DNA from: Orbicella franksi
Lineage: Eukaryota
Length of the DNA: 64,000 bases
Assembly: GCA_964199315.1 (NCBI GenBank)
Contig: OZ116704.1
Coordinates: forward strand, 30,256,001 to 30,320,000
Reading direction: 5' to 3'
Shown: positions 11,378 through 51,600 of the stretch, piece after piece
Numbering within the stretch: position 1 is the first letter of the stretch
Layout of the letters: each line of letters opens with the position of its first letter
Notes under the pieces: model-generated
Databases searched by the model: none
The model's input: only the letters and a program-made list of their open reading frames with translations
What the model was told of the DNA's origin: nothing
Position numbers and translations under genes: made by a program

Positions 11378-11409
<32 letters not shown>

Positions 11410-15975: not shown

Positions 15976-16021
<46 letters not shown>

Positions 16022-25620: not shown

Positions 25621-28600
25621 ATGATGTGGATTGCTGTGATATTACTTTGTGCTGTATCGTATCCATCAAACGGTGCGAGAATGCTCGGGGTGGTTGGAAC
25701 GGACTCAAAGAGTCGCTATGCGAACATGAGGAATTTAGCTGATGAACTGTGTTCGCGTGGGCATGAGGTTTGTTATGTTATTTGTTATTCTTAAGGAGGA
25801 AACGAAGATGAATTTAGAAGTCTTTACTACGACTTCGGAGAGCCTGATAACTGAGTTACGATAGCGCGCGTCAAAATGTGTGGTCAGTGAAAGGATTTTA
25901 AAGCCTGGCCACCTTTAGACTTTCTGAAAAGTCCTTCGTCTTATTCAGTTTATTCAATACTTCGTCGCTCGCTCGGCCGCTTGGCGACCTTAAAACGGCC
26001 GCTTGGCGACCTTAAAACGGCCGCTTCGCGACCAAACATATTCTACCCTGAAATTCATGAGGTCGACTTGTGGCAAGTCTATATATGGCCACCTCTGCAC
26101 GCGATCTTCGAATACACGCATCAAAGATCATCTTTGAATACACTTTTGCCGCATACATCAAAGGTGGCGAAGGTCGTTTTTACTCACCTGTGAACGCATT
26201 GATTTGCGTAGAATGCAAAACAGCCGTAATTTTTGCGAACGCAAGCGACGGTCAATATTCGAACGAAGGTCTGGAGCAGGAGGGAGGGGGTGACTCTGTT
26301 GTTTTCCGGTATTTATTCGTGACCGACTCATCGCTACCAGTGTGACGTCACATAGCAACGAGTGAGCGCTTCGAGTAGCTTATTCCGATTACGCCATTTA
26401 AGAAGGACAACAGAGTCTAAGAAAGACAAAAATACAGGCCTAATATCGCTTTTGTTCGCTAACTAAGTGTAGGTGTGTGCAGTTTGTTAATGCTTTTTGT
26501 CTGTGTGCATTATTTGTTTTAGTTTTGTGCGCGCGTTATCGTGTAACCTTGTTGAATTTTGTTGCGGGTAACTGACGGAACCGCCATCTTGAAAACGAGA
26601 TGAGAGCCCGGGGTGTGGGGGATGGGTACTCTCAGAAAAGCTGGGTGGGGGTGTGCGGCCCGCTTCCCAAAACCCTTACCCTATTTATGACCAAAATCTG
26701 CGATATTCCTTACCCTATTTGTGGTCTGACCAAATATTCAATACCCAATTTATGACCCGACCAGTAAATCAAAACCCTGTTTCAGACCTGCGTTATAATA
26801 AGTTCCCTATTTCAGACCAATGTTGAATTACCGTAAACATAATTTGTGATGGGCTTTTGTTAATTTTCTTTTCGATAATGATGAAAACGTGGCTTCTTCT
26901 TAAAAACATACCCATATCAACGCTAGAGTCCAAAAACCATACCCTATTTATGACCAAAATGGCCGAAATAGGCTAAAATCGATACCCTATTTATGACCAA
27001 AACGGGTGAAAAACCATACCCTTTGGGGCCGGACATACCTATATAGCTCATATAAGGGAGTACCCCACTCCCCCCCCCCCCCCCCCCTCCGCGGCGGATG
27101 AGAGAAGTCAACGTAGAACGTTCGCGTTTTCTCTCTTAACCCTTTGAATACCAACTACGCATCCATGCGTAATTATAATGGTCGTGCTATTTGTACCACT
27201 TGTGACGTCATCAATTTCAATGCCATTAGAATGATATTCTTGAGAAGCGATAGTAGTGCTAGGCTAGGCCTTTCCGCACAATGGTCAGGTTTAGATATCG
27301 ACGACATTCCGATGTCGCAAATCGAAAAACAACGTTATCAGTTTTGGTGCAAAAACGGTGGTAAAATGGTCCACTACGCCTATGATTGATCAAGGTCCAT
27401 TTCTAGGCTTCGCCCGTAATTAACATCCAACTTTTCACGGCAGCCAGAAAGAACATACAACGCAAAAGGTAGCCAGTGTAAAAAAAAAAGTCCAAATTTT
27501 GGCTTATGCGGATGCCCGGAATTGAAATTTTGCTCAATTTTGTACCTAATCCTCAAAAAATCTCTCCTTTAACAAAAAAAAGAGCTTTCTTAGCAAAACT
27601 TAGGCTTATTTAGCGTCATGGCAGCTAAAAAACCTGACTAAACGGTTAAAAACGGTATTTTTTGGCGAAAGTTTGGTATTCAAAGGGTTAAATGTCGTAC
27701 CAATAGTTTTGTTAATAGGAGGTTTTATGCGTCGATAGTATACGTTTAATCCGCGTGTATCGCTGTGTCAATTGAACCAGCCGTTCCTCTCATCACTCCG
27801 TTTGAGTGTTGAGATGTTGTTTATTTCTTGATTTCCACCAAAATTTCCCTGCGATGTGATCGGTTTTTGTATGTTTTGGAGAACTTTTGGTGGTAGTTAT
27901 CAGGCCTATGAATTCAGTTCTTTGTGTTTTAATTGTGTCCGCTTTATGGTGATATTTGTTGGCTATTAAGGCCCAGTTCAGACGTCGTGCTTCTGCCGTG
28001 CCGAACTCAATTGCAATTTAGTTCGACTATGACACGGCAGAAAAACAACTCTGATTCAGACGTTGTGCCAGAGTCGAATCAGATTTAGAATTTACTGATG
28101 CCTCGTAACAGTTCTCCTCCTAACTCCCCGTGGGAACGCAATCCCGCCAAAATATATTAATATAATTTATGAATTTTGTTTGGCGCGACAGAGGCACAAC
28201 GTTAATTCAAAAGTTTGATTCAGACGCCGTGCTTCTGCCGTGCTTTTGTAGAACTTAATTCCTGAGTTTGGTTCGGCACGACAGAGGCACTGCGTCTGAA
28301 CTGGGCCTTAATCGTACAGCAGCTTTATTTGTTGGCTTTTGTTGTGAAGGTTTGTTGGCTTTTTTTTGGGTACGTTCTCGGTCAGTGGGCACGATCGAAA
28401 AAAAGGGCCGAGCAACAAGCGGGTTCTTGTAGAGAAAGAGACGGAGAGCTTGGAACAGGCTAATGATCATGCTGCAACTGTCCTGCATTGCCATGTTGTA
28501 ATGGCTCCTATTTCTTAAGCCTCCAAGAATTTCAAGGCTGCATTGTAGTCTTTTCGTCCCTTTAAGTTCTCATTATATTCCAACTAAAAAACAACCCTCC

Positions 28601-31600
28601 ACTAAATGTCACTAAATAGATATTGCTGCATAACACTCAAAATAAATGAAAGCAAATGCTAAGTGTTAGAGTGCAGAAATGCCGTAAAGACAATCTGACA
28701 TTTATTCTTATTATGCCTATTAGCTCTTTTTATTTATTCTGCTTTTATAATCATCTCCTGCTCTTCACAGGTCCACATAAGCCTATATGTGCCATTTAAT
28801 CCATCAAATATTGTCACTTGCATGTCTTTGTCTAATAGCATCACTAAATGCTCCAGCTACAACTTTGAAATATTCTCTAGTGAAGTGGCATTCCCCTTTT
28901 TTTAAATCTTCAAGCAGATTCTGCACATTGCCAAAAATATTTGAAGGATAATAAACACAACAGCTTCCATTTGACTTTCAAAATATGGTCGATATTTGTC
29001 CTTGGACATTATCTGTTCCTATCTTCTCGGAATGGATAATGTCCACAGAGTGGACACCGAATGAAGGCTACTTTTCATAAAACCTGCATTACTAAATAAA
29101 GGAATGATTGATTGACTGAATCAATATTTCTCCCTCGGACTCCGGAGGTCCATAAGTTTCATTCTCCTCCAGTGTGCTTAGCAGCTATGCTCCCATTCTG
29201 ACCATATATGGCCATACATGCCCTGCCTGATCCATTGTTAGTGGTTTTATTTGTGGTTAGTGTGATAACAGTCAGCGCTGAAAACCTTGATGTTAGCTCC
29301 AGAGAATTTCCCCTCTTTTGCTCTGTTTTGCGTCTTCATAGCTCAATGTTTAGTTATCCTGTGTAAAAATGGTTGAATTTCACTACCCTAGCTTTTTCTG
29401 CAGTATGGTATCAAAGTCAATAAGGTTGGTGGCATCTATTTCAGTTGCTGATGTAACAGAAAAATCACATTTTTTTAACTTCACACCAATTAAGTGAAAC
29501 TATCGTAAATTTGGGATCTCATATTCCAAATTAAGCTTGTCAATTGATTTATACTGGCAATCAAGCTGTGGTAAACCTTTGTATGACTCTGTTCCTTTAA
29601 AGGAAATATCTTGGGCTGTCATTATCAATGGGAGTTTAATAAAGAGGTGTGGAAAAGTGCTTAAGGTGGCTCCCTAGAGTAATTACGAACAACCCTCCCC
29701 ATAGAACACGAGTTATAAGAGGAAACTTAGTTAATTTCTCTTACAGTTTTCCCCATAGAGATTTACCAGTATGGGTACTGTTAAAATAAGGCTTATTTTT
29801 GGATTAAGGGCGTTACCATGGCAACATCTCATCTAATGACAAGCAGATATATTCCTCATTTTGACCTAAACTCTTTAGTATTTATACTTTCCTTCGGTGA
29901 AATTTTTTCATACTTCGCCACATCATGGAAATTATATTGCTTGACATTTTGAATCGGTAAACACTCAAGGTTGTTCAGACGGTTTTTCCAATATTCTGTA
30001 ATTAGTCATTATTCTAAATATATTTATAATTTTATAAAAGAAGCCCGTTTCCAGTAAGCAATAACTACGCCATAGGGCGCTATGCCCACACATGTACACA
30101 ATGCGAACAATTTTTTTATGTTGCTTTCCATTTCTATTCTTTTCAGGTCTTGCTTATTGTTCCCAGTAATTTACCATTTCCGCCGTCGAAGACAGTAAAG
30201 CATTCGATTTACGACAATCCTTTGGAGATGGACTACGCTGAGAAAAACATTATACCCAAGTGTCTTTCTGGATCGCGATGGGAAGTTATTCAGCAATCTA
30301 AAATGTGGATAGATGTCTTGGTGAGCTTCTGTATATCAATTATAAAACACGTGAAGAAGCACCAAGAAGAACTTAAAGAATTCGATTTGTTATTTGGTGA
30401 TTCACCCCCAGCTTGTCACGTGATCATCGCCGAGTTTCTCGCCCTTCCCCGAATTGATATCGAACCAGCCTTTCCAATGAGACTGAAACCCGAATTAAGT
30501 CTAGTGTCATATATTCCCAGCCTATTATCCTCAAATAGTGCTGAAATGAGCTTTATGGAACGACTTCAAAACTTATTTTTTTTTGGAGTCATGAAGAGAT
30601 CAGAAATGTACTTTTCTACTCGTTACGGGGAGCTTAAAACAGAATTCAATATTATGCCAGAAAGACATTTCCAGGTCTCCATTCATATGGCGGAGATGAC
30701 CATTGTCATGGGCCACTTTGCACTGGAATATCCTCAACCACTTTTACCAGGTATTAACACACAATTAACAACTACTTCATATAATAAAATATGTGCAAGT
30801 AATGTAAGTCATCGATCTAGTGGAAACTAAGTAACGCAACCATCCTATGCTATTGCTTTTAATTCCCACGAAAAAATGGAGAAATATTGGACAAATTTGC
30901 AGGTTCAGTGGTTGACCAAGCTGCATGCAAATATTTCTCCAATATTTTCGGTATGTCTCCAATACGGTCCAAACAAGCAGTTCAACAAAGTATTTATTAT
31001 CATAGTTCTTTTCAATCTACGGCTAAATTGATGAATTTCTGTTATGTATTCTCGGCAAACGCGCGCGAAGGGTAAGCAAATTTATTCACGTTTCGCATGT
31101 CGCTGATGTTAACATTTAACTGAGTAATTTCCTCGAAACATGAAGGTAAAAAGATTTCTACCTAACAAAAAAACCTGTTTATTTTCTGTAATGAATTGAA
31201 AAGCAGTTCGCCGAAATCAATTCGTGAGCGTCCATCTTAGCGGCCCGTATTGCAAAAATTGGAAACCAACCAGACTTCTCCTTTACTTTGCAGACCATTC
31301 AGCCATATAATTTTTATTTATTATATGTAACACATCTACGGTTTGATATTTTTACCCATTCATGTCTCAAATCACAGACACTAAACTAGTGGGACCGTTA
31401 ACAGTGAAACCCCCAAGGTCACTTCCACAAGACCTTCAGCAGTTTATCAGTGGAGCAGGAGACAAAGGGATAATACTGTTTTCATTAGGAACACTCGGGG
31501 ATGAAGTGTTGCAGAAACACCAGGTGGACATGTTGGCCGAAGTTTTCGGAAGACTGGAGCAGAGAATAATATGGAGATTAAAAAGTAGGTCCTGTAAGAA

Positions 31601-34600
31601 ATTTGCTCTAAAAACAATAAGAAGAAACTTCTTGAAAAATGACAAAGGGCTACGCAGTGCAATAGGGACTTTAAGATATGGTACGGCTAGGCTGTAGTAC
31701 GGCTGCAGATAGTGAAGATCACTTCCGGTGACGTCATGACGCGCGTACCAGTACGGCTTTCCCACCGTAGCCTTGATTTCTACTACGGGAAAGTGCCTGG
31801 TTTCACGTACTCTTCACTACGTGAGTATAAGCCTGCTGTTTACTTCTCATTTTAACGCTTTTTGCACTGTTTGAACAGCCTAGTTTGAAGTAATAATTTT
31901 AGTAATTTTAATTCATCAATTAGCCTTGTGGCCGATTGTTGGGGTGGGATGGGTAGCGTGCACCACGTAAAACGTGATTCACCTACCTCAATTCTCTCAT
32001 AACATCAGAGCTATTTGACGTATCGAATGTGGTTTAGCGTTGTCTGTACTCTTATCGACAACGATATGCGTCATCATAGTGGTCAAAATGTTGTGCACCC
32101 ATGAGGCGCAGCCGAGTGAGACCACTAAAGCCTGCGTCATCAGGAAAGAATGTTTTGTAGCTCAGCGACGGCAAATGGCCATGAGTTGTGGTAAGAAAAC
32201 AAATTTTCCGTGTAGCTCGGCGACCCTCAGATCTGTGGTCAGAAAATAAATTTTCCGAGTTGTAGCTCAGCAAATTCGTGGTGGCCATAATTGGTTGTCG
32301 GAAAACAAACTTTCCATGTTGTATAACTCGCCAAAAGGCCGTGTTTTGTGGCCAGAAAGGTTAATTCACCTTTTTCATTTGTGAAAAAGAGATGAAAATT
32401 CGAACAATGTAAACAAACACAAAACATTTGACGACGCGCTACAAACGTTGGCGTGAAGGGGTGAAATTGTCAGGTTTGCAAATTCAACGTATTTTTGAAT
32501 TAAGAATTGAAAACAAACAAACAAACAAACAAAAAAAATCAAATCAAAATCAATCAAAATCAAAAACACCAGAGTAAAATTTAAGAGTTGTCGTGAGAAA
32601 CAGTTATTGTAAGTAATATTTGGACCTTGAATGAAAATACACACGTGAAACATACACACTCCTAATTAAGATTGTGTCGTATCGAGGTTTCTGCCCCTGC
32701 CCTAGCTGACCACCAAGGTAAATACAAACCGGGAGTGAACCGAGCAGGGGTGACATTGTATGTGACTACTGTGTCAGAGCTAACTGTTGTATGTGAGATT
32801 GTCTCACTAGTTTTATTATGGAAATGTGCTGCGTTTGGTCAAGTAAATCTTCTTAGGAAATATTAAAACAGTTCTGTCATGAGGGTTTAAAGCCAACTTA
32901 AAATTTAGATCTTTTTTTTCTAATTGTTTTAAACTTATTTATCCAGTTCATACTTATTGTTGACAATCACCGTCACTGAAAAAGCCCGCGCGCCCCTCTT
33001 GTATACCGTAAATACTCGAATTAACGCCTCCTCCCAATAAGCACCCCCTTCGAATAAGCGCCCCTCCTATCTGCCACAATTTAAAATAAGCGAGTACTAA
33101 GATCGACAACTGAGGATGTATTGCACTGGTTGTGTTTCATCACAAGCAAGTGATTATCGACTCATCAAGCACTGCGCATTGACCGTCACAACGGATGGTA
33201 GTGAAGATCTCCTGATTCATTGCCTAATAAAGGCCGACCAACCTTGTGCAGTAGGCCTAAACCTGCTAAAGGGGTCGCATTACAAAGTTCGTCAAGAAAT
33301 ACACGATTCTTCTGAGACTTCTAAGGAACTGACACATACAGGAGACCATGACCCTGGAAATACAAATATCAGAACAAACGATCAAATCTGACCACGTTTG
33401 GGAAAAATTAAGTAAGCGTCCCTCCATGCACGATTAAGCGCCTCCTTCGAATAAGCGCCCCTCGTCTTCTCCCAAATTTGAAATAAGCGCCCCGGGCGCT
33501 AATTCGAGGATTTACGGTAGTTTCCTAACTCCACGTAATAAATTCTTTTTCCATTGAAGGGCATATTCCAGAAGATCTTTCCTCGAACATCAAAGTTCTC
33601 CCATGGATTCCACAGAATGACTTATTAGCCCATAACAGCACCAGAGCCTTTATTTCACACACAGGTCACAACAGCTTATATGAAGCAGCTTTTTATGGTG
33701 TGCCACTGGTTTGTGTGCCAATTTACGGTGACCAACCTAGTAACTGCATCCAGGCTCAAACGGTTGGGATGGCAATTGGTGTCGATTTAAAGACGCTGAC
33801 TGGTGATGAAATGTACCAGTCAATATGGCGAATCCTAGAGGAACCAAGGTAATTTTGATTCTTTGCTGTCACTTTGCTGAAACTGTTACATATCGATTGT
33901 CATATATTTCTCTTCATGAAACTAAAAATAGAATCAGTATATATCCTTTACGCGTACGCGATGAGCCATATTTCAATAAATGAGTTAGATACTGTGAAAC
34001 TGTTGGAATGAAGAACGAATACGCAAAAATATTTAGCCACAATCTCGCTCACAAGGTGACAGATGATCATCGTTTATATGTATTTCAGGGATCGAAATTC
34101 CTAGTTTGATATTGTTTAGCTTTTTATCATCTTGTCATCATTCTGGAAGTTGCAAAAGGTTGTTAAGATTTTATGTTTATTAGTTTCAATTTAGCTTAAG
34201 TTTTAAGCAACGTTTCGATGGGAACAACGTCTCATAATGAAATGATACCTTTTGGGGTGAAAATAAATTTAGGTTTCGCCCGCGTACGGGTTTTGGTGCC
34301 TTTTAAGAGTCAAAATGGAACCCTTTCCCAGAGACGTATGATTCCTTGGCAATAGGTTATCGACTACTACCACAGTCGCGTTCATATTCAATTATGGTCA
34401 GATTTGTAAATCAATAACTTCGAATTTTAAGCCTTGAAAGTCTTCGGTCTCTTTATTAATCTGTATGTGTTTGCCTTTTCTCTTTAGCTTTAAGGGTAAC
34501 GCTACTCGCATCTCGCGATTGATGCGTGACAATCCGCGACCTTCCGTTCAGCAAGCCGCTGACTGGATTGAATATGTTCACAGACACAAAGGAGCCAAGC

Positions 34601-34776
34601 ACCTCAGACCGGAAGTGTATAATCTCCACTGGTGCCAATATTACCTCTTGGATGTAGTTGCATTCCTTTTAACTGCAATTTTTGCATTTTGCTTTGCAAT
34701 TAGAGTGCTTTTTAGACTGTCGTGGAAGATTGTTACCAGGCTTGCGAAGGGTAATAAGACCTCGAAGCAAGAATGA
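25621..34776 (+). CDS. UDP-glycosyltransferase (UGT/GT1 family, membrane-bound type), copy 1, 511 aa
   Basis: Exons 25621-25767, 30147-30750, 31378-31584, 33560-33848 and 34488-34776, all GT-AG and in frame. It has a signal peptide, the UGT signature WIPQNDLLAH...FISHTGHNSLYEAAFYGVPLVCVPIYGDQ, and a C-terminal TM helix with a basic tail. Confidence 0.93.
26605..27090. repeat. Dispersed repeat with internal ACCCTATTTATGACC modules (second copy about 47625-47940)
   Basis: Multiple ACCCTATTTATGACCAAAA modules and an end CCCTTTGGGGCCG...ATACCTATATAGC shared with 47625-47940. Confidence 0.7.
27140..27687. mobile_element. piggyBac-like MITE, 548 bp
   Basis: TTAA|CCCTTTGAATACCAA...TTGGTATTCAAAGGG|TTAA. 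Confidence 0.88.
27970..28307. mobile_element. PIF/Harbinger-like MITE, copy 2 (inverted relative to 23099-23504)
   Basis: TTAA|GGCCCAGTTCAGACGTCGTGCTTCTGCCGTG...GTCTGAACTGGGCC|TTAA. The interior is the reverse complement of the copy 1 interior, with deletions. Confidence 0.8.
31671..31889 (+). repeat. Dispersed repeat, copy 2 of 5321-5520
   Basis: Near-identical sequence, located in intron 3 of UGT copy 1. Confidence 0.8.
33006..33517. mobile_element. pogo-like deletion derivative with a transposase C-terminal remnant
   Basis: TA|CCGTAAATACTCGAATTA...TAATTCGAGGATTTACGG|TA with subterminal AATAAGCGCC repeats. The internal frame CALTVTTDGSEDLLIHC resembles the CGxxxxxDGSEDxxI motif of pogo transposases. 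Confidence 0.7.
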
Positions 34777-35050
34777 GAACTGCTTCAAAGACAAAACATT
34801 ACACTGTTAGTAGTTGTGATTTAATTTTACAACCATGGCTTCTTTGGTGCTTGTTTCCAAATTTTTGTCAACAATGCAATCCCATTGAGACAAGGAGGAC
34901 TGAAATGGGGGAGAAGGGGAGGTGTGTCTTTGCACAAGGAACTTGAAATTCCTATTGTAACCGCTTTTCGGCAGACATGCAACTTCATCCTTTCTTTTCT
35001 TTCTTTTCTTTTTTTCATAATTAAAGACAACTTTGGTTATCGTTTGTTAA

Positions 35051-35330
35051 AGGCGCGGTGATCTAATGATTAGTACGCTGACTACGGATCAAGCCGTCCA
35101 CGTTCGAGCCCTGGTCGGGGACATTGTGCTGTGTTCTTGGGCAAGACACTTTACCCTCACAGTGCCACATAGGGGTATAAATAAGTACCTGCGAATTTAA
35201 TGCTGGGGTAGCCCTGTGATGGACCAGCATCCCATCCAGAGGAAAGTAGAAATATTCCTGGTTGCTTCATGCTCCAGAAATTGGAGATACATGCCGGCCT
35301 GATGGACCACTTGGCTCGTACACAGACTTG
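35051..35330 (+). mobile_element. tRNA-derived SINE copy
   Basis: A/B-box-like head (GGCGCGGTGATCTAATG...GTTCGAGCCC) plus the core shared with 830-1062. Confidence 0.75.
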
Positions 35331-35678
35331 GTCTTAGCTATTTTGTTTGTTTGTTTGTTTTTTTACTTTATTTTGATTTTGTTTTTCAAATTGAAGAAAT
35401 CCAAGAGAGCAGATTGCGCCAGTTAGAAATGATTCCATTCAGTTTTACGACATATTACGCCAGTATTTTATGTTATTGATTGTGAGACGTGCTATGAAGC
35501 TGTCAAGTTACAGGGTGATTGGTCTCTGAATCTCAGAAGATCAAAAAATAAAAAAAAAATGTCTGGTCTGAATCAAGGCCGAGTCAGTTAGAGTTGGTAT
35601 CACACACAAGGTAATTAGCATACCGGAGTGTTACTGTAGATAAGGGTATCTGTAAATACTATTAGACAAACGTCTAAC

Positions 35679-37560: not shown

Positions 37561-40500
37561 ATGTGGATAACTGTGATCCTAATTTACATCGCAATTCCTC
37601 TAATTAGTGGAGCGAAAATACTCGGTGTGCTAATGACAGAATCCAAGAGTCATTACTCGAACTTGAGGAACGTGGCAGACGAAATGGCATCGCGAGGTTA
37701 TGAGGTTTGTGATCTCACTGAGTTGGTATCAATGTGTAGCATTGGAGTTACATGTAAGACTGATCACTCAACACGCAATTTTTGTAGTCGTAAGGTGTCG
37801 TAGGTAAGACCATGCACTTATTTGGGGTTCGGTAAGTTGTTTCTATGCGGAAGATTAGGGCGATGTTAATTGGCGTAACTGTTCCATCACCGCGTTTGGA
37901 AAATTAGCGTGCTATAAAAGGCTTGGGGCTAGGGGACAAAAATATATTTTACAGCTATTATGGAGTTCTCATGAATTAATCGAAATACCTTACTTTATTA
38001 GACTGCCTAGGCCGCTAGAGGCCAGGCTTGTTTCATGTTCTGCGTTAGAAATTAAGTTGATTCAAGGGTCATTCAAGGGTCAATAACCACGCGGCCTGGG
38101 CCCGAGCGCGGTTCGCCAAAAGAATGAGGATCGAGGACAACCCGCTCCGGAAGGATTCTACTGTGGTAGTTGTGTGTAGTCATCATCACTATTCTCACTC
38201 CCTTGGTTTCATTTTTATCTTTTTCAGGTAACTTTAGTTGTCCCATCTACCATATCTTTTCCAGCGTCGATCTCAGTGCAGCATTTAGTTTACAAATACC
38301 CTTTCGACGAGAAACATGTAGAAAAGACATTAGTACCAATGTCGCATTCTCGATCGCTCTCGGAAATTGTAGATGATCACAAAATGTGGATGGATTTCTT
38401 TATCACCTCGTGTAGAGCTTTGATAACTTACGTTAAGCTTCATAGGGAAGAACTAAGCAAATTCGACCTAATGTTTCGTGACACTCCTCCAGAATGTGGA
38501 GCTATCGTCTCCGAGATGCTGGGTATTCCAAGAATCGACATCAGACCAGGAATGGCGATGCGACTTTACAAAGATATAAGCGTGGTGTCATATATCCCTG
38601 ATATGTTCTCCTCGAACTCTGATAGAATGAGCTTTGTGGAACGAGTTGTTAACTTGATTTCTCATACTCTGACGTGGGTAACAATTTACCAATATTACGC
38701 ACGCTTCGACGAACTAAGGAAAGAATTTGGCGTACAGGAACAAAGATCGTTCGAGGACTCTCTTAACAACGTAGAGGTGGTCATAATCACGGGTCATTTT
38801 GCTCTGGAATATCCTCAGCCAATTCTACCAGGTAAGAGCTATTATTCAAACAGTTAGAGGTTGTCACTTGGCGCTGGTGATGTGGAGACGGCTGATGTGG
38901 TATGATCGCTAACGTCGAGACACCAGTCGTCCATAAAATCTGCTCTCAACCAACATTGACACCGAGTTGAATTTTTTTTACTCGTGTCCCTTCTTCACCT
39001 TTTTCATGGTCCGAGAAGGAAATCAACTTTTAATAACTAGATCTTAAGCATAACCTTTACCACCATGGTGGCTGCACGACTCGTGCTGAGGAACTTTTTT
39101 TTTAAATCTGTACATATCTTATTGTAACAACATCGACACAAAAATGTTCGTTAATCTATTGTTTTAAATCAAAGCTACCAAACTAGTGGGACCATTGACA
39201 GTGAAAACTCCAAGTCCACTTCCAAGAGACCTGGAGCAGTTTATCATTGGAGCAGGAGACAAAGGGATAATCCTGTTTTCATTGGGAACACTCGGGGATG
39301 AAGTGTTGCAGAAACACCAGGTGGAAATGTTGGCCGAAGCTTTCGGGAGACTGGAGCAAAGAATCATATGGAGATTAAATGGTATGTTAAGACATTATAA
39401 GAATAGCAGATTACGTTTTATCCTCAGGACACATGAATTCTAGCGATCTCGTCGACTGCAATCTATGAATCAAGGAGCTTTTAATTCGGTATTTTATCAA
39501 ACAAATAAAGATGCCCGGACAGTGCTCTGTTCTGTTGTAAAGCACTCAGGAAGTGGTAGAGCACGAAAGTGTAGGGAGAAACACGAGTAGTCGAGTGTTT
39601 CTCCCTACTTCTTGAGTGCTCTACCGCTTCCTTAGTGCTTTACAACAGAACAGAGCACAGTCGAGGCTTCTTTGTTTGTTTGTTATAAAGAATCCATTAA
39701 TTTACCCAAGCATTCGACTGAATTTTCAAACCGAACTTTATTTTCCAAACGAGGAAAAGTGGCGTCACTGTGCATCTGTTCTCTGATAAAGCACGCGAAA
39801 ATACGCCAATCACAATCATTGTTAGGATTATTCAAATAATTTCCTTGGCTAACGAGACAACAGCTGTCAATCACAACCTGAATTTCATTGAGTTAACCTT
39901 TCGGTTTCGGGTAGCTTTCGAGAGAAGAACGATTGCTTCAAAGTTCGCTTCTTCGCTTGATTTTTTGAATAAGGATCTAAAGGTTTCTAGTCCAGAGGAA
40001 CCCGGCCGCATTGGGGCTTATGAAAACGTGCACTTTTCCAGTGGAAATTACGAAACAAGGAGCTCAAAGCCCGCGGATGAAAATGGGAAATGCTAAGTTG
40101 TAATTGAATGGAACTACAGTTACTTTACGACTTGCAGCGAGATTGCCCGAACTAGCCTCAAAGCTGGAAAGACTAAGACTACTCCTAATGGTTCTACTCT
40201 GAGTACAGGAGAGAATATCTGAGCAAGCTTTAAACTGATCGCTCGTCGAGTGAGCGTTTTAATTGTTGAGGTTCACTTCGCTGAGACTACCGGAGATCGC
40301 TAGTAAGCAAAGGAGCGTTACCACATTGCATGTCATTGTGTTGTTTTAGCATTTGTGCAAAAATAAAGCTTCCCGTCATAAACAGAGACAGCTCAATTGG
40401 CATTTTCTGTCGTTGTTTTCCTTAACTATAATTTATAATTTATAAATTTGTGAGCCAGCTTACCGTCATCAACCCGCGCGTCTGTTCTCTGATAAAGCAC

Positions 40501-40605
40501 GCTTTTTCAGCCAATCAGAACGCGCGTTATATGCAAACGTTATTATAAAGCCTCTTATACTTGTAATGATCTGCGAAACGATCGCTGGATGAAGGTCTTC
40601 TGTGT

Positions 40606-40638
<33 letters not shown>

Positions 40639-41753
40639 TTGTTTTGCTGTTTTTGCTTTGTTCTTTTTTCATATTAAAACTGAAGGCAGTTCCTAGCAAC
40701 CAGTGTTCTTTTCACTGACCCTACTATTCACGTAATCTGGGACTCTTCCTTCTCCATCAATGAACCCTTTCGCTCCTCCTGATGCCGAGGAGTTCTTAAA
40801 ATACGAAAGCAAGAATCCCGAACATCGATCCTGCTACTGAACTGACAGGATAAGCCGACCTCCTAGAAACAGGATCTAGATTTCTGAGAGAAACGTACGA
40901 ATCTTCTATATAATTATGCATCAGTATAATTGTAACACTTTACTCCTGTTGCTAAGTCTAAGCTTTGTAACTCCAGAATGTCTTCTTTCCTGAAGGTTAT
41001 GTTCCAAAGGGTCTTCCTCCAAACGTCAAAGTTCTTCCATGGATTCCACAGAATGACTTATTGGCCCATAACAGCACCAAAGCCTTCATCTCCCACACAG
41101 GTCACAACAGCTTATATGAGGCGGCTTTTTACGGTGTATCACTGATCTGCATGCCGCTTTTTCTTGACCAGTTTAGTAACTGCGCCCAGGCTCGATCAGT
41201 TGGCATGGCAATTGGTGTTGACATAAAGACTGTGACTGGTGATGAAATATACCAATCCATAAGGCGAATCATTCAAGAACCAAGGTATTTTCAGTTATAA
41301 CTTTAACACCCCCTGCGTTGATGCAGCTAGGTTATCCGAAAGAGACTGACATTGACTCAAGCCAAGATATTGCCACTGCCCTAACAGAACCACCAGCTAT
41401 GCAAGGCTAAGAAGGCTAAGGCCAGATCCTTTCTCCTAATGTTTGTGTGTGCATTCCTTTTTAGCTTCAAGGGTAATGCTACACGCATCTCGCGATTGTT
41501 GCGTGACAATCCGCGGACTTCCGTCCAGCAAGCCGCCGATTGGATTGAATATGTCCACAGACACAAAGGAGCCAAGCACCTAAGACCGGAAGTGTATAAC
41601 CTCCACTGGTACCAATATTATCTATTGGATGTACTTGCATTCCTTCTAACTACACTTTTTGCATTTTGCATCGCAATTACAATGCTTTTCAAACTGTTGT
41701 CCAAGATTGTTACCAAGCGTGCAAAGGGCGATAAGATTTCAAAGCAAGAATGA
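37561..41753 (+). CDS. UDP-glycosyltransferase copy 2, 510 aa
   Basis: Exons 37561-37704, 38228-38831, 39175-39381, 40996-41284 and 41465-41753, all in frame. It has KSHY with the catalytic His, the signature WIPQNDLLAH...PLFLDQ, a TM helix and the tail KGDKISKQE. Confidence 0.94.
39493..39689. repeat. Imperfect palindrome/hairpin repeat of about 195 bp
   Basis: The arms GTGCTCTGTTCTGTTGTAAAGCACT...GTAGGGAGAAACAC and GTGTTTCTCCCTAC...AGTGCTTTACAACAGAACAGAGCAC are reverse complements. Confidence 0.85.
40608..40637. repeat. (GTT)10 microsatellite
   Basis: Direct reading, in intron 3 of UGT copy 2. Confidence 0.9.
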
Positions 41754-43123
41754 GAGCTATTTCTAATGAGCACAGTTAAAAGATGCGGACAAAACTTTCG
41801 TTTGACACTAAGTTATTACTGTAATGAGGACGGTGTTTAGAACATCGTGTAGGATTGTTTCCAAGCGTGAAAAGGTCGGTCTTAGCTCGAGGCAAGAATG
41901 AGAGCCGTTTCCAGTAAGTTAAATTTGTAGGCACAGGGGCAGATCCGGGATTTTTCTTAGTAAGGGGTGCACCACTAAGGCATGGCGTAACTGACTGGTG
42001 AGGTAAACAAATTTCAAAAACAACTACGAAGAAAAAAGCTTCATCTCAAGGGAGGGGGGGGGGGGGGGGGGGTTGCGCAGCCCTTGCTCCCGTCTTCTAG
42101 ATCTACCTCCGAGGCACCTATAATGAGTCATTTGACCCTAAGAAATGGTTTTCACCAGGGTAGAAATACTCTCCTTCGTTACTTGGGAAACTGACGCAGC
42201 GCTTCTCCTTGAAAATGTTGCGAGACGACACAAATGAGGGAGCCGTGAGATAGACATTTAGGTTACATCCCCTCCTCCCTCTCTTCGACGTCCTCATGGA
42301 GTCTGCCATGCCAATAGTCGAAGCATTGCAGCTGCTACTGTTGAGTTACTGTAGGTGACACGCGTACAGGCCAACAGAATTGATTTCTTTGCAAAAGTAG
42401 GTAAAACTTAATAAAAAAAAAAGCTTTCTCCTAACTGTTCCGTCTAAACATTAGTTTTTTGTCTTATCAACGTTTTTGATTTTGAACTACAATGTAGAAG
42501 AGAGAGAACCAGAATCGTCCGTATAGTGCAAGGCATCAAAAGGCCGCCATGTTTTAAAACAATCGGCCTTTACCTACTAGTGAAGGCATTCCACTTCCAT
42601 CTACTCACTCCGCGTTTCCTTTAAACGTATCGTGCTTTGTTGTGTGCATGCCGTTCGATTTGCGATCATTTTGCATTTGGTAAAATTGCTGCTTACTAAC
42701 GTCCAGAAACGACCTGCTTTACCCCCTTCCACCCTTACCCCGCTAAACTTACAGTGAATATCACGACTTTGGGTGCATTCCTTGGGATGATCCAGATCAG
42801 GATCAAGGAATCGATGAATCCACGCTGGCGAAGGATTCATCGATTTGTTTGATGCACTATGTTCTAATCCGGGTGATCCTAAAGAATCGCATCCTTTCCC
42901 CCGTTTAAGTTTAGCTGTCACGGGGTTATCATGTGCGACTTTTTGTGGAGTGGTTGAGTCGCTTGGCAAATGGCCTACTTAACAGTTGTGATTTACATAA
43001 GACCCCGACGTAGCCATACACGTGGCAAAGATGATATAATATTCGGTGCCTACTCTCAAGAGCTGCATGCCATTTACATGCCCAACTGAGCAGCTCTGTG
43101 AAGGTGTCGGACAATTATTAATC

Positions 43124-46100
43124 ATGTGTATATGGATCACTGTTATTCTGCTTTGTACTGCGTCTTATCCGTCTAATGCAGCCAAAATACTCGGCGTGTT
43201 GATGACAGAATCGAAGAGTCGTTACTCAAACCTCAGAAATGTGGCAGATGAATTAGCATCACGAGGACATGAGGTTTGTGAACTTACTTATTGAGATTGT
43301 GCATTGAGTATCCATGATCTGAATGGATAAGCTTCATCATGGTGTACAGCCTAGCACCTGTACAAGATGTATGATTGAATATTACGTTTTGTTGTTTTGC
43401 TGTCACATCCAGATTTATAAAATATTTGGTAACAGTTGAGTAGGTTGTTTGTATGCAAGGCTATTTTTGACCATGTGGCAATTTTTCGCATAATTTTATA
43501 GAAAATCATCCAACCATTAAGTGGCTTTCTCAATTAGTATCTATCAAAACTAATATGTGACAACAATGATGTTTTTCTAAGGAGTCCTTGAGTACGATTC
43601 ATGGCTGATTAAAGTAGTGATGTTTTTAAGTTCTGCCTCAAAGTTGCACTAGTCTGCTTTGCACTTAACATCACAAGCAATGGATATTTCCGCGAGCTGA
43701 CAGGATTAACTTAGTCCTGCGCTGTGATTGGGTACACGCGCGGACCATAAGAACTATCCTGTCCATTCGGGTTTCCCCGAGAAGTTTCCCTCGTTGGTTG
43801 TTGTTAACCTCATGCAATGACCCTTTACCGACTAAGTCTACTCAGTGAAGGTTAGATATTGTCCTCTTTCTTTCTTGCGTGTTTATGGACCTCCACTGTG
43901 TCACGGTTCATAAACATAAAAGAGCTCTTGGCCACCATCAGCCATCTTGATCATAACCCATACTCAAACACGAAATGTAACAGAAGGTTGCGTGAACTTC
44001 AATCTAAAGAGGTAACAGGAAATGCAAAAATAAATAAATAAATAAATAAATAGATGATTAAAAGAGGCGACTGAAAGAATGAAGGGAAACTGTGGAGCTC
44101 GGTAGGTAAAGTCAGTTGCGTTTCTCTTTTGAAAAGAATTCACACGCGTGGTATGGTATGGCATCAGTTATTTTTTGACTAGAAATTTAGATTAAACTTT
44201 TAGTCAATAAGTTTTGTTTTTTCTTTCTTTCTATATCTTCAGATCACTTTAGTTGTTCCATCCATCTTACCATTTCCAGCGTCGCACACAGTGAGGCATT
44301 CCGTCTACACCTACCCTTTCGAAGAGGATCATCTGGAAAAAACTATAGTACCAAAATCTCATAATCGACCTCTTTGGGAAATTTTCCAGGATAATAAAAT
44401 GTGGATAGATAACTTTATCATGCCATGCAGAGCTTTGATTATTTACGTTAAGCTACACAGGAAAGAACTGAGAAATTTCAATCTAATGTTTTGTGATTCC
44501 CCTCCAGAATGTGGAGCTATCGTCTCCGAGATCCTGGGACTCCCAAGAATCGATTTAAAATTGGCAGGCGCGATGAGATTTTTCAAAGATATAAGCGTGG
44601 TTTCATACATTCCTGATATTCTGTCGTGGAACACTGATAAAATGAGCTTTGTAGAGCGGGTTGCAAACTTGTTGTATCACGTGCTAATGTCTGCTACAAT
44701 AATGTACAATTATGCTCTCTGTGACGGACTTCGGAGAGAATTCGATGTACAAGAGGAGAGATCTTTCCAGGACTCTATTAACAAGGTGGAGATGGTTATA
44801 ATCATGGGTCACTTTGCATTGGAATATCCTCAACCAATTTTACCAGGTACGAGATAATAGTGAGGCCGGATAGAAGCCCAGACTGGGAACTGCTCCTCAA
44901 AGCGGTTTTCCACAAAACAACTCAAACGGTTGATCGTAACATAATACGGCCTAAACCATGCAAAACTGTAATTTTAGCAAGTGCTGTTTGAGGGCAGGGT
45001 GTTTCGTAGAGGGCCGCAAGGCCCCTCAAAGATTCAGAACGATGATAATTAATCTTCAATAACTGAGGAAGTCTATATCACAAAGTGTTTCACAGAAGGG
45101 TCTTCAATTGACAAAATATCACATAAAAATGAAAACAATTAAGGAAAATTACTACGAACTTACGAAAACCTCAGATCTAAAATTGACCAAAAGTAGCTAT
45201 TAACAGGTGGGGCATGTAATGCGTGTGTAGTCAAATACCATTTCTTGAGTGATTGGATTTGATATTCTTATAGTAATTCAAATTCTCCCCTGGCCCAAGC
45301 TGGCTGGCTCACTTCAAGCGGCTTTTATGGTTAGACCAGGAATTACCTAACTCACTTTTTTCTCAATTACATCAGCTCCGTGAGTGGCTGCCCATTGTTT
45401 CCGTGTTTTACGTAATGATTACATTTGAAACTATAGTTTAAGTTTACCTCCTGTTTTAAGCACAGCCACCAAACTAGTGGGACCGTTAACAGTGAAACCC
45501 CCAAGTCCACTTCCACAAGACCTGCAGCAGTTTATCAGTGGAGCAGGAGACAACGGGATAATACTGTTTTCATTAGGAACACTCGGGGATGCAGTAATGA
45601 CGAAAGACCAGGTGGACATGTTGGCCGAAATATTCGGAAGACTGGAGCAGGGAATAATATGGAGATTAAACGGTAAGTTAAGGTATAAGGTGTTAACTCA
45701 TCTAGGGAGAGAAATAAGGAGCATTATAACTGTTAGTGTGCGGTCTCATAACGCAAAATCATGTATGTTAAACTTGGCGTGCGCTTTTGCCGAGATTGTC
45801 CTCGGTCACCATCAATGGGCCTGCCATAAAGCGCGTTACTGAGTTAAAATATATTGGTGTTATCTTTGATGAACACCTCAGCTGGAGCGAACATGTTAAA
45901 GCTATTGTTGGTTTCTAAGGCTGGTAGGCGGATCGGTATGCTAGGCCGTGCGTGCCGATATATCACTTTACATAGTGCTAATGCCATTTATATTTCAATG
46001 ATTGCACTGATTATAAAAGTATATCAGCATACAAAGATTCCGGCAAAATCAGTATATTCTTCATGGGAGAGTGAAATTGTGTTTACTTTACTCTCGCAGT

Positions 46101-47109
46101 GCCTCGCTCCAGCCAGGTGTATAAATGGGTGCCGGCGACCTTAATACTGTGGGTAACCCTTCGATGGACCTGCATCCCATCCAGAGGGGAGTAGAAATGC
46201 TCCTAGTCACTTCATGCTACAGAAACCGGGATAAGTTCTGGCTTAATGGGTCATTTGGCTCGAATGCAGACTTAACCTTTACCTAATGTATCACTCGGTA
46301 CATGAGTATATCCATGAGTCTCTATGAGTACTTCCATATATGAGTACTTCCACGAGTATATCCCTAAGTATCCATCTTAAACTCAATTGTGTCGCTATAA
46401 TGTCTTTTTCCCAAAGGATACATACCGATGGATCTTTCCTCAAACGTGAAAGTCCTCCCATGGATTCCACAGAATGACTTATTGGCCCATAACAGCACCA
46501 AAGTCTTTATATCGCACACAGGTCACAACAGCTTATTTGAAGCAGCTTTCTACGGTGTGCCACTGGTTTGCGTACCGATATTCTTTGATCAATTTAGTAA
46601 CTGCGCGCAGGCTCAATCGGTTGGCATGGCAATTGGTATTGATATCAAGACAGCGACTGGTGATGAAATATACCATTCGATAGGGCGAGTACTCGAACAA
46701 CCAAGGTAATTTTACTCAATTTGTATAGTCACCTACTTCGTCAATAAATAACTATTTCATATGGCATCGCCATTTAATCCTACGGACCACAAATGAACTG
46801 TTTTATCTGTTTTAACTTTTTCTTCATAGCTTCAAGGGTAACGCTACTCGCATCTCGCGATTGTTGCGTGACAATCCGCGAACTTCCGTCCAGCAAACCG
46901 CTGACTGGATTGAATATGTTCACAGACACAAAGGAGCCAAGCACCTCAGACCGGAAGTGTATAATCTCCACTGGTACCAATATTACCTCTTGGATGTACT
47001 TGCATTCCTTTTAACTACAATTTTTGCATTTTGCTTTGCAATGAGAGTGCTGTTTAGGCTGTTATGTAAGATTGTTGTCAAGCAAGGACCAAGACTGGAC
47101 TTCCAATAA
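43124..47109 (+). CDS. UDP-glycosyltransferase copy 3, 509 aa, altered C-terminus
   Basis: Exons 43124-43273, 44243-44846, 45466-45672, 46417-46705 and 46830-47109, all in frame. It has KSRY, the signature ...PIFFDQ, and ends KIVVKQGPRLDFQ*. Confidence 0.92.
45805..46005 (+). mobile_element. Frameshifted L2/CR1-like RT fragment in intron 3 of UGT copy 3
   Basis: VTINGPAIKRVTELKYIGVIFDEHLSWSEHVKAIV, then a frameshift, then SKAGRRIGMLGR. This matches the KYLGVxxDxxLSWxxHI...KA motif of non-LTR RT thumb regions. Confidence 0.75.
46090..46285 (+). mobile_element. 5'-truncated SINE copy
   Basis: CTCTCGCAGTGCCTCGCTCCAGCCAGGTGTATAAATGGGT...CATCCCATCCAGAGGGGAGTAGAAAT...TTCATGCTACAGAAACCGG, shared with 830-1062 and 35051-35330. 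Confidence 0.7.
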
Positions 47110-48613
47110 AAGCCTTTAGGCCGTTTCGCGACCGTACTACCATGACAATGCAATACGCATACATAGTATTCAGCAATTTTACGTTTTAACCTTACCTAGC
47201 TTAACATTTTTTGACCTCGCGTTTTAAACGAATTTATCCCTTTTTAAATTTAGTTTTTTTCCTATATTTGATGGTGACATCTAGTTAATTAGTTGGTAGA
47301 AAAAAACCAGACTTCAATACTGAAGATACTACAAGAGAAATGAAGCTACCACTCTAGAATGTTGTTCGAATAAAGGTATTATCGTTTTTAAACATAATTC
47401 AGTGTCGCTGTGATTCTTAGATATATAAGGTTCAGTTGATAAAGGAGAGTGCTTGACAATCCAAGTGGGCCTCAACCAACGCGAGGTTATACGGTTCACA
47501 AAAGATTCCCAAACCTCTGGCGCCCAATTCTACGTATAAATCTACTTTTCGTCCTATTGTTTCTACCATCCTCGTCCTATTGCTTCTACCATCCATCCAG
47601 GAACATCCAATTACAACCTTCATGACCAAAATCTGCGATTTTCCCTACCCTATTTATGACCTGATCAAAATTTTGATACCCTGTTTATGACCGTTGCGGT
47701 TGACACAGTTGCCCTAAACATAAGTTATGAAGGGCCTTTATCGATGGTCTTATCCATAATGATGAAAAAGCAGCTTCCTCTAAAAACATACTCAATTGAA
47801 ATCTAGATTGCAAAAACAATACCCTCTTTATGACCAAAATGGCCAAAATCGATACTCTATTTATGACCAAAACGGCTGAAAAACCACACCCTTTGGGGCC
47901 GCATATACCTATATAGCCCATACATGGGAGAACCCCGCGCGTAATTGACGTACATTTTGGCAAACGTTCGGGTAAAAACCTTACCAAATAACTGGCTAGC
48001 AGACATAACTGAAAACTGGTTAGCTTGGTTGTTTCCGAACAACTGGCAACTCTCGGAACTAGGCAGCTTTAGTTAAACGCGTTACGCGATAAGCACCATT
48101 GCGATATATAAATTCAAATGCAGCACGCGCGCAACATTGAACGTAAACGGCGCGCGTCAAACTTGACAATTAAGATAAGCTGACTGTTCAGCGAAAAAAC
48201 GTCTTTGATTACATTGATTATTTGAGTTTCGCTGCACAGAGGTGTACATTAAAATATGTACTTTTAATCATAAGGCGATCTCACTTCATGCAAGGAGATT
48301 TGGAGATCCTAAATAGAAGCAAGAGCACGCAACGAGTGAAAAAATACACTGCTTTTCATCCAATGGGAACGAAAAGTAGCCCTAGTATGAGAATGCAACA
48401 AAACTGCATTTTCGCAAAACCGCTCTACTGTTTCGCCCTTTTATTACAGGCCAATTAAAGTACCCGTGATGCAATAGCAGAGTCGTTGCGTGACCTCAAC
48501 ATAACAATTGAGGCTTGAGCTCTGCAACCGATTCACTGGTTGCAATTCTGTTTCAACAAACTAACAAGGCTCACTAAAAAAACTGGAACTTTACGTATTT
48601 ACGATTATCTATC

Positions 48614-51600
48614 ATGTTGTTCGTTGTTATCTTGCTCTTTACTTTTTGTTATCCGTCCAATGGAGCGAAAATACTCGGTGTGCTGGTATCAGAATTCAAG
48701 AGTCACTACTTAAACATTAGGAATGTGGCCGATGAATTGGCATCGCGGGGTCATGAGGTTTGTAATCCACAGTTTATGTGCCCGTAATACTGAAAATTTG
48801 AATTGATAGGCTTGAGAAACGTAGAGAACTTCAAACATATTTAACATGTAAGATACATGTTGGGAAAATGTTACGTAACAGTCGAGTACGGTTAGTTTGT
48901 ATGCTGCTCAGGCTAAGAATGCTCATAACTTACTATTCCCTCATAAATTTTAATAGAAAAGCATTTGATAGATTGGTGCACTACAGGTCGTGTGTTTCGT
49001 GATAAAGTAAGCCTAGAGAATCTCATTGACATAACCGAGTGCTGTAAGCATGCAGCTCCAGAGGGAAAGAGACGACCGTAGTCAGTCGTGCGTGAATGTT
49101 GAACCGGGTAACAACCTTTCGATTTTACAGCTACTTAGTCATGCAATATATCTCATATTAACCAAGCTCAGGGAGAGAGGATCGCGAGAGTCGGAACATG
49201 TCACCGATATTCTCACGAGGATTCCGCCGATATCGGCTCGATTTCGTGACCTGTCGCCAGATTTTCAGACACTTCATTTGCCTGCAACACTCATCAACCC
49301 TCGCTTATGTCATAAACAATGGAGTGGAGTAAGCTAACGCAAGCTTACATATGCACTGACGCACAAAGCCACCCTTGCATGACTCCCTAATCTCAACTCA
49401 AAAAGTTGTTTGACTCGCTCATCGTATCCTTATTCGCGTACGGCCTATAGGTCTGAGGACCTGCTTGCCAGAAGTACCTGAATCGAATTGATAACTCGTT
49501 CTGTAAACAAGCCTACCAATACGGATATTCAACCAAGACTGACTTCAAAATATGTTCATCTTATTGCTATACATAAGACTGTAGATTATAAATTGCATGT
49601 ATTCATCTTGCTTTCATTCAGGATTTGACTGTAAAGACTCGCGTCTGCTTGATCTGACGTTTTTCAATGACAAAAAATGTTATTATTATTATTGTTATTA
49701 TTATTATTATTCAAATAATGTTTTTCACCTTAACATTTACCTTTTTTTGTTTTCTATTGCCAGGTCTCTATAGTTGTTCCATCTGTCCTGCCGTTTACTC
49801 CATCACCCTCGTTTAGGCATTCTACTTATAAATTTCCTTTCGGCAAGGATCACTTGGTAAACACTTTTGTTCCGAAATCGCATAATCTATCTTTTTTCGA
49901 GGGTGCAGAAGACAACAAAAGGTGGATGGACTACTTTTTCATTTCATGTAGAGCTCTGCTGAGTCACGTTCAACAGCACAAGGATGAACTAAAGAAGTTT
50001 GACTTGATGTTTTGTGATTCACCTCCAGAATGCGGCGCTGTCGTCTCTGAAATCCTTCGACTGCCGAGGATTGACATCAAACCTGCAGGTTTTGGGATGA
50101 GATTTAATCTAGTTCTAAGTGTGGTTTCTTATATCCCGTGGATATTTTCATCTAACAGTAATCAAATGAGCTTTTTCGAGCGGGTTGAAAACTTGTTTTA
50201 TCACACACTGATTTCAGCCTCATCTTGGAGCTATTACGCGCGCTACGACGGACTCACGGTAGAATTCGGCGAAGGAGGCGAAAGATCTTTCCAGGAAGCA
50301 ATTAATATGGCGGAGATGACCATCATCATGGGTCACTTTGCTCTGGAATATCCTCAGCCAATTTTGCCAGGTAAGAGCCAATGAATAACTGACCGCATGA
50401 CAAACCGTCAAACACACATCCGAGCCCCCAGCTCTATTTAAACTGAGTGACGAAGGCTTCGACACCGATCGTGCCCTCTAAATCGCGGCCGTAAGCAATG
50501 CCTATCCTTTTTTCTGGACGAATAATGTCTCGCAGTCTACTCAATCTCAATCGAGTGAAGAATAATTTCATGTAAGGAATCTATCCTCTGACTATTTGCT
50601 TTTAAGACCCTCAAAGCTAGATTCCGTGAACAAACATATTTAACGATTTTTTTCCCCCAGATCTTTTCTGCTGACCTGTTGTACAAGGTATATCAGAATT
50701 CCCAGAGACCTAACAAGCCGCACAAAGGTATTGAACTTTACTGTCACATTCACACTACAACGTTTCTGTTTTGAATCACAGCCACAAAATTAGTGGGACC
50801 ATTGACAATCAAACCCACAAATCCACTTCCTAAGGACCTGGAGCAGTTTGTCGACGGAGCAGGAGACAAAGGCATAATCCTGTTTGCATTAGGAACACTC
50901 GGGGACGTCGTATTGAAGAAATACCAGGTAGACATGTTGGCCGAAGCCTTTGGGAGACTGGAGCAGAGAATCATATGGAGATTGAAGGGTAAGTTTATAA
51001 ATGTGATCACTGCATTGCAGCCTAACTCCCTCTCTGCCCTCTTTTTGTAAACTTACAACACCCTCTACCATACAAAATTCAATCTCCTTATACCCACTGA
51101 CTTCAGTGATGACTTGAGAGCCCATTAATTTGAGGATTCTGATACATAACATCATTAGAGCCACAAAGGTCGCCAGAGAATGTACTGCCTTTATATATAA
51201 ATATGTTTTGTATACACCAATGTGATAACGCTGCCCCCAAAATGATCAAAGATTTTGTCAAACTAGGCAAGCATTTTCTGGTACATAAAACGTCACTTGC
51301 TGATTTGCATAAGACACGAAAGGAATTGGACAGTGCTTGTCACCGAAGCAGAATTTCCAGCAGTCTAGAATTTTCTACCCCTACACTCCACCCTTACTTT
51401 ACTATTATATCCAACAATTGTTTGGTCCAGGATCGTGCGACGAAGGTCCTCTGTTTCCTGTATTTGAATTGAAAGAGTACACAAGGTTTCAGTCATTGGA
51501 GATTTCACGAGATTCTAAACGTTGATGGGCGATAATATGACTAGTGAAATTTATCCCCATTCACCCCTCTTTAAGGTCGAGGGGGTGAGGGGGGGTAGGG

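Follow-up and report, generated by a model that had tools for sequence, protein, structure and literature searches.

A tandem cluster of four UDP-glycosyltransferase genes

The DNA analyzed here, referred to below as the window, is a stretch of 64,000 nucleotides from the coral Orbicella franksi (contig OZ116704.1, positions 30,256,001 to 30,320,000 of the forward strand), and all positions given without a contig name are counted from its first letter. It contains four tandem UDP-glycosyltransferase (UGT) genes on the + strand, each made up of five exons which, in the spliced models, form an uninterrupted frame of 509-511 a.a. In two of these genes, copies 1 and 3, the codon in the column of the catalytic histidine specifies arginine, while copies 2 and 4 carry histidine. 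The gene models were built from stop-free segments and conserved peptide anchors; their introns are all of the GT..AG type with matching phases, and none of the four frames is broken. The exons of each copy are as follows:

25621-25767, 30147-30750, 31378-31584, 33560-33848, 34488-34776 (+): UGT copy 1, 511 a.a, Arg type
37561-37704, 38228-38831, 39175-39381, 40996-41284, 41465-41753 (+): UGT copy 2, 510 a.a, His type
43124-43273, 44243-44846, 45466-45672, 46417-46705, 46830-47109 (+): UGT copy 3, 509 a.a, Arg type
48614-48757, 49764-50370, 50782-50988, 51686-51974, 52262-52550 (+): UGT copy 4, 511 a.a, His type

Exons 2-5 of all four copies matched PF00201 at 39-97 bits, above the curated cut-off of 19.5 bits for this family, with exon 4 scoring 97.4 bits in copy 1 and 85.9 bits in copy 3. 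The first exon of each copy carries KS[HR]Y...RG[HY]E, and the donor signature WIPQNDLLAHxxxxxFISHTGHNSL[YF]EAAFYGV...P....DQ is present in all four. Hydrophobic N-termini and a putative C-terminal membrane helix (YYLLDV...LFRLL) were read from the sequences by eye. No UGT copy beyond these four was found by tblastn of the window, and a scan of the genome for KSxY-type UGTs likewise returned copies 1-4 only, with no fifth member.

For human UGT1A1, H39 has been proposed to act as the general base with D151 in support (PMC1885805), the His taking the proton from the acceptor hydroxyl with the Asp assisting (PMC1885805; PMC6851746). The equivalent codons of the cluster were read in the spliced models for the His column and by alignment for the partner Asp:

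25714-25716 (+): catalytic-column codon of copy 1, CGC, Arg32 (KSRY)
37651-37653 (+): catalytic-column codon of copy 2, CAT, His31 (KSHY)
43220-43222 (+): catalytic-column codon of copy 3, CGT, Arg33 (KSRY)
48704-48706 (+): catalytic-column codon of copy 4, CAC, His31 (KSHY)
30399-30401 (+): dyad Asp134 of copy 1 (FGDSPP)
codon at 38480 (+): dyad Asp133 of copy 2 (FRDTPP)
44495-44497 (+): dyad Asp135 of copy 3 (FCDSPP)
codon at 50016 (+): dyad Asp133 of copy 4 (FCDSPP)

In all four copies, the KSxY site lies ~30 codons past an ATG, with a GT donor downstream. The original prediction, made from the letters of the window, had described these KSRY and KSHY codons, and all four were confirmed upon rereading; its further statements that the partner Asp and the DQ motif are kept and the frames are intact in all four copies agree with the spliced models.

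The assignment of the Arg residues to the catalytic column is supported by two lines of sequence comparison. When the four spliced proteins were aligned with 29 full-length UGTs from a profile search (33 rows), Arg32 of copy 1 and Arg33 of copy 3 fell in a column shared with the His of 22 of the 33 rows, among them a UGT2B-like sequence (P0068, EYSHW) and a UGT1A-like sequence (P0066, DGSHW). The distance from the residue in this column to the G of RGHE is 15 throughout the aligned UGTs, and the Asp of copies 1-4 stands in the same column as that of the vertebrate-like motifs LTDP and FSDA, which is the column of UGT1A1 D151. A profile of 20 animal UGT N-domains could also be aligned to the bacterial GT1 structures 8h5d and 7vm0 (E 1.6e-5), where 'ggSH' falls on 'GEGH' near the N-terminus and 'FDLlivD' falls on 'YDYVIYD'. 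Animal UGT N-domains are without a solved structure of their own: a search of PDB sequences with exons 1 and 2 matched none, and a PDB search with a full-length UGT profile matched C-terminal domains only (UGT2B7, 2B10, 2B15, 2B17). The predicted positional homology between the Arg and the catalytic His is upheld by these alignments, in which the Arg, and not some other His, stands at the catalytic position. Judged by sequence, copies 1 and 3 belong to the UGT fold family with Arg in place of the general-base His of PF00201/GT1, which copies 2 and 4 carry; neither can be presumed to follow the canonical mechanism.

Arginine is fixed in two orthologous groups under purifying selection

Arg is fixed in the orthologous groups of copies 1 and 3 across several corals, and these groups are under purifying selection. 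Protein searches gave mostly exon-sized open reading frames (ORFs) from genomic contigs, and orthologs were rebuilt from those contigs for three other corals, all with intact frames and canonical splice sites. Copy 3 orthologs gave a ratio of nonsynonymous to synonymous substitution rates (dN/dS) of 0.15-0.31 at a dS of 0.21-0.80, with 0.12-0.27 for the N-terminal half alone; the His-type orthologs of copy 2 gave 0.13-0.17. A search with the first exon of copy 3 returned 21 exon-1 ORF clusters from other assemblies. KSRY was seen in 9/9 clusters of the copy 3 type and KSHY in 7/7 clusters of the copy 4 type from other corals, with the copy 2 type showing KSHY in four of five clusters (one being the window's own) and KSRY in the fifth (P0196). 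The first exon of copy 1 retrieved six further clusters, all six with KSRY. The Arg codon of copy 3 drifts between CGT and CGC, and the residue stays Arg.

Among individual corals, one (L034) has His in copy 2 and Arg in copy 3, the same arrangement as in O. franksi, while another, represented by two independent assemblies (L030 and L031), has Arg in both copy 2 (CGT) and copy 3 (CGC). A more distant coral (dS ~0.7-0.8) also has Arg in copy 3 (L033), together with a further KSHY paralog (the gene of P0163, L032) in which ~125 bases split the first exon, as an additional intron or as damage to the gene. In Oculina patagonica, one KSHY gene and one KSRY gene are adjacent (L037). We also noted Pao/BEL-type retrotransposon ORFs between orthologous members of the UGT cluster in two of the other corals (L034:2017-7344; L032:3979-7436; L033:14753-18210).

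The exon-1 core of copies 2 and 3 had been described as identical apart from the catalytic residue, and this proved correct: A-KILGVLMTESKS-x-YSNLRNVADE is the same in both copies except for the H/R, and across the DNA of the 24-codon core, we counted 9 synonymous differences and a single amino-acid change, that of the His/Arg codon itself. Given these 9 synonymous differences, the identity of the core has been kept by selection, and recent gene conversion is ruled out as its cause.

The history of the site was followed on a maximum-likelihood tree of exon 2, a region that excludes the trait codon. Four groups were recovered (copies 1, 2, 3, and 4 plus others), with those of copies 2 and 3 weakly sister, and at least three changes between His and Arg are needed within the KSxY ingroup. 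Forcing all non-His KSxY genes (those with Arg and one with Cys, a codon one CpG transition from Arg) into one clade cost 131 log-likelihood units (p-AU 7e-62), so that the proposed convergence test rejects a single origin of the non-His state. With the outgroups counted, six changes are required whether the ancestor carried Arg or His (hand count; the tree minimum is also six), and the two directions of change appear to fit the tree equally well. Arg occurs in every copy 3 ortholog found and in the earliest-branching of the three copy 2 orthologs of known state; copy 2 may, by this sequence evidence, have returned from Arg to His, instead of copy 3 having gained Arg. The original suggestion that the change recurred is therefore upheld insofar as the residue has switched repeatedly, and the particular gain of Arg from His that it placed in copy 3 is one of two histories that fit equally well.

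Gene conversion has probably left its mark elsewhere in these genes. Among the paralogs, dS is 0.27-0.53 for exons 3-5 and 0.85-2.2 for exons 1-2, that is, 2-8 times lower in the former, which indicates, from the sequences at hand, homogenization of the donor-domain exons by gene conversion. One database contig (P0165) fits this picture, being chimeric in exon 2, with a first half like copy 3 and a second half like copy 2. Conversion from copy 3 is nevertheless an unlikely source of the Arg in the copy 2 ortholog of L030, which uses CGT and has flanks of the copy 2 type, whereas copy 3 of that coral uses CGC.

Evidence for expression was taken from assembled contigs of RNA libraries, not from raw reads. 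For a 4.2-kb stretch of copy 3, 14 RNA runs contained 27-37% of its words, which equals the exon share of the stretch, and the joints 43273>44243, 44846>45466, and 45672>46417 (exons 1-2, 2-3, and 3-4) were found in RNA contigs as modelled. Record 9 of run X3 covers 43134-43271 plus the first of these joints with zero differing letters and, hence, carries the CGT codon. Copy 1 is represented by the words of its exon 2, 73-100% of which are present in RNA runs of ~9 studies, and by an X1 contig in which the final 28 bases of exon 4 run directly into exon 5 and a copy 1-specific A is present (at the place of 46864); the RNA evidence for copy 1 thus covers exons 2, 4, and 5. A contig with copy 2-specific bases in run X1 documents the mRNA of copy 2. 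The RNA joints also revealed a further feature of copy 3:

45461-45465 (+): the 5 bases between the tandem acceptors of copy 3 intron 2 (aag|cacag, 45459-45466)

The joint 44846>45461 occurs in the polyA run X6 and the in-frame joint 44846>45466 in X1. The tandem AG is conserved in the copy 3 orthologs of two other corals and absent from copies 1, 2, and 4. In each of three RNA runs, the contigs over a segment of ~140 bases in intron 3 of copy 3 (46102-46242) add up to a depth of 8,000-16,000 and have numerous loose ends; the segment is a highly abundant dispersed repeat, probably a small transposable element that is either transcribed or contained within many transcripts.

Catalytic consequences of the substitution

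The Arg change is real, old, kept by selection, and expressed, and hence probably marks altered chemistry as opposed to dead genes. The reading we favor, held with about even confidence, is that copies 1 and 3 encode functional family-1 UGTs, predicted to be anchored in the endoplasmic reticulum (ER), in which a selected Arg has replaced the general-base His and whose acceptors would need no base. A guanidinium group, if salt-bridged to the partner Asp, would make a poor base for a neutral hydroxyl and a good anion holder. Enzymes of this kind would most likely glycosylate nucleophiles that are already deprotonated or that need no deprotonation; the favored acceptors would then carry or readily take on a negative charge (carboxylates, thiolates, and acidic enols or phenols), with the Arg holding the anion by the anomeric carbon. 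Anionic acceptors are favored over amines because the replacement residue is cationic. That the His is dispensable for some acceptors is suggested by UGT2B10, which naturally carries Leu and is specialized in N-glucuronidation (PMC7781194). Under this proposal, the repeated exchange of His and Arg in close orthologs would amount to a one-nucleotide change of acceptor chemistry in a fast-diversifying cluster for detoxification or metabolite tagging.

A number of observations weigh against this proposal. The acceptor class assigned to copies 1 and 3 is pure inference from sequence, and dN/dS is slightly higher in copy 3 than in copy 2. In the coral of L033, a gene similar to copy 1 has Cys in place of the Arg (KSCY; L036:8142-8237, on a contig of ERZ25067872), and exon 1 of one copy 1 ortholog (L035) seems to contain a frameshift, possibly the result of faulty assembly. 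Part of the copy 3 mRNA uses the upstream of the two tandem acceptors, adding 5 nt and running into a stop after five codons. The proteins of copy 3 (whose end lies at 47080-47109) and its orthologs also lack the K-rich tail of copies 1, 2, and 4 (KGDKxSKQE) and have a different short tail instead, KQGPRLDFQ or QGK... Finally, because the C-terminal exons are homogenized, the conservation of the donor motif is partly borrowed from the His-type neighbors.

The alternative that survives best, doubtful as we consider it, is that copies 1 and 3 are conventional O-glycosyltransferases in which the Arg-Asp pair, the Asp alone, or another residue serves as the base, with the same chemistry acting on different aglycones. 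A site that flips between the two residues in close orthologs with 88-95% identity in exon 2 would be easiest to accommodate if the chemistry were similar, the Asp is always kept alongside Arg, and arginine is known as a general base beside carboxylates in other enzyme families. The pKa of guanidinium is, however, very high. Experiments on animal UGTs point the same way, with O-glycosylation being lost in UGT1A1 H39D (PMC1885805) and abolished in the insect SfUGT33F28 by a change of His to Leu that brought no gain of N-glucosylation (PMC7781194).

The original prediction also allowed for regulatory pseudoenzymes. Copies 1 and 3 would, in that case, be catalytically dead proteins with a non-catalytic role, either as partners or regulators in UGT oligomers or as binders of UDP-sugar or aglycone, and the missing general base, the changed cytosolic tail and partly non-productive splice form of copy 3, and its slightly raised dN/dS over that of copy 2 would all be in keeping with such a role. 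We regard this as unlikely, given that the Arg itself is conserved without drift, that neither the donor motif nor the Asp has been lost, and that the acceptor-binding N-domain is under purifying selection (omega 0.12-0.27). Neither lost binding motifs nor relaxed constraint, as might be expected of a pseudoenzyme, was found (dN/dS 0.15-0.31).

Specialization in N-glycosylation, put forward earlier by analogy with human UGT1A4 and UGT2B10, is distinctly unlikely. Loss of the His is the hallmark of both human N-glucuronidation specialists (PMC7781194, which cites Kerdpin 2009); the analogy is weakened by the nature of the replacement, which is a neutral Pro or Leu in the human enzymes and a cationic Arg in copies 1 and 3. 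The product formed from a tertiary amine would itself be cationic (a quaternary ammonium) and a poor neighbor for Arg, the His-to-Leu change in the insect enzyme gave no such activity (PMC7781194), and copies 1 and 3 are not orthologous to the human enzymes.

A reading in which the copies are decaying or silent duplicates, or in which the Arg codon is a mistake of sequencing or assembly, has the missing His as the sole point in its favor and is effectively refuted, as the frames and splice sites of all four copies are intact, spliced copy 3 RNA carries the Arg codon, copy 1 mRNA was seen spliced, Arg-bearing orthologs occur in several independent assemblies, and dN/dS is well under 1; the sequencing error and the lack of expression with dN/dS near 1 that the original prediction had named as grounds for discarding it are both excluded by this evidence.

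The chemical defence of animals relies on UGTs as its chief conjugating enzymes, for which the textbook mechanism is a His-Asp dyad. Were the Arg enzymes active, they would represent a second working mode for animal GT1 enzymes, would direct attention to acidic metabolites of the coral or its symbionts, or to pollutants, as substrates, and would bear on both coral chemical ecology and the prediction of UGT function from sequence; were they inactive, they would constitute a conserved family of UGT pseudoenzymes. Copy 2 of the window and the copy 2 ortholog of L030 provide a natural His/Arg ortholog pair that is one nucleotide apart at the codon.

His-less UGTs and comparison with known systems

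The 497-Mb genome contains ~25 UGT genes, with clusters on six contigs. The regions upstream of each exon 2 were scanned with an exon-1 profile, giving the following states of the catalytic column:

His state: ~18 genes (SGSHY, GRSHY, GKSHF, GSSHY, GISHG, KSHY)
Gln state: 5 genes (GGSQY), at C15 20.51 and 21.39 Mb, C9 9.62 and 9.63 Mb, and C4 9.45 Mb (C15:20510626-20510760, C15:21.39 Mb, C9:9.617 and 9.630 Mb, C4:9.45 Mb; loci L006, L011, L017, L019, L014)
Arg state: 2 genes (copies 1 and 3)
Arg state, doubtful: 1 (a degenerate EGSRY exon, C15 20.51 Mb, minus strand)

Some ~7 of the ~25 UGT genes of this genome are, hence, without the catalytic His, five of them having Gln. As the Gln state is shared with Nematostella vectensis (P0015; P0218, 'UDP-glucuronosyltransferase 1-2'), the Gln-type genes appear to form an old anthozoan lineage of His-less UGTs. 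Five full-length clusters that are only distant relatives have Arg at this column as well, in the motif NSR[LV]; the annelid Owenia fusiformis accounts for two of them. Thr (with Asn replacing the Asp) and Leu also occur in the column among the aligned UGTs. Loss of the His is, by these sequences, common in invertebrate UGTs, which makes the case of copies 1 and 3 less singular. A non-exhaustive search of the literature turned up no animal UGT described as having Arg or Gln in the catalytic-His column. It is possible, as a tentative extension, that Arg-Asp and Gln-Asp UGTs represent unrecognized functional classes of animal enzymes for anionic or pre-activated nucleophiles, with a single CAY/CGY transition at the catalytic codon having been reused in both directions in corals to move a paralog between base-dependent and base-independent acceptor chemistry.

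Other UGT loci of this genome showed features of their own. At two of the Gln-type loci (L017 and L019), the latter half of exon 1 is also present in several incomplete extra copies. A more distant UGT of the GSSHY type lies ~39 kb past the end of the window on the minus strand (C7:30358940-30361127), and a single intronless UGT ORF of 560 a.a of the GISHG type (C10:14844610-14846034) may be a retrogene or a UGT8-like gene.

The four genes share with the animal ER UGTs (PF00201, CAZy GT1), including the vertebrate UGT1/2/3/8 and insect enzymes, the order of acceptor and donor domains, the DQ signature, and the arrangement in tandem clusters; the hydrophobic segments at the two ends of the proteins may correspond to the signal peptide and the single C-terminal membrane helix of these enzymes. 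Copies 2 and 4 have the canonical S-H...D dyad of these enzymes, from which copies 1 and 3 differ by having Arg for His. The layout of the cluster also differs from that of vertebrate UGT1, where exons are shared, in that the coral genes are whole-gene tandem duplicates of five exons each.

Human UGT1A4 (Pro40) and UGT2B10 (Leu34) resemble copies 1 and 3 in having lost the His while keeping the Asp and the donor site, and in having His-bearing paralogs in the same cluster. The residue that takes the place of the His is neutral and small or hydrophobic in the human enzymes, a type of replacement absent from copies 1 and 3. The coral Arg is also of independent origin, is common to the orthologs of several species, and toggles with His. 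The anthozoan Gln-type UGTs (GGSQY, as in N. vectensis P0218) are likewise His-less in the same column with the Asp kept, and the O. fusiformis UGTs (P0033 and P0138, NSRL) have the very same Arg substitution as copies 1 and 3, again with the Asp kept. Both belong to other subfamilies (~30-39% identity) and are of independent origin, and none was found to be characterized in the searches made.

A precedent for the role proposed for the Arg of copies 1 and 3 comes from plant glucuronosyltransferases of the UGT73P12 and UGT94B1 type, in which a guanidinium group in the His-bearing loop contacts a carboxylate in the active site. In UGT73P12, this residue is Arg32, which lies three residues from the His and forms a salt bridge with the carboxylate of UDP-glucuronic acid (PMC6851746). 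The plant Arg, however, stands three residues past an intact His and binds the carboxylate of the donor, whereas the coral Arg replaces the His itself.

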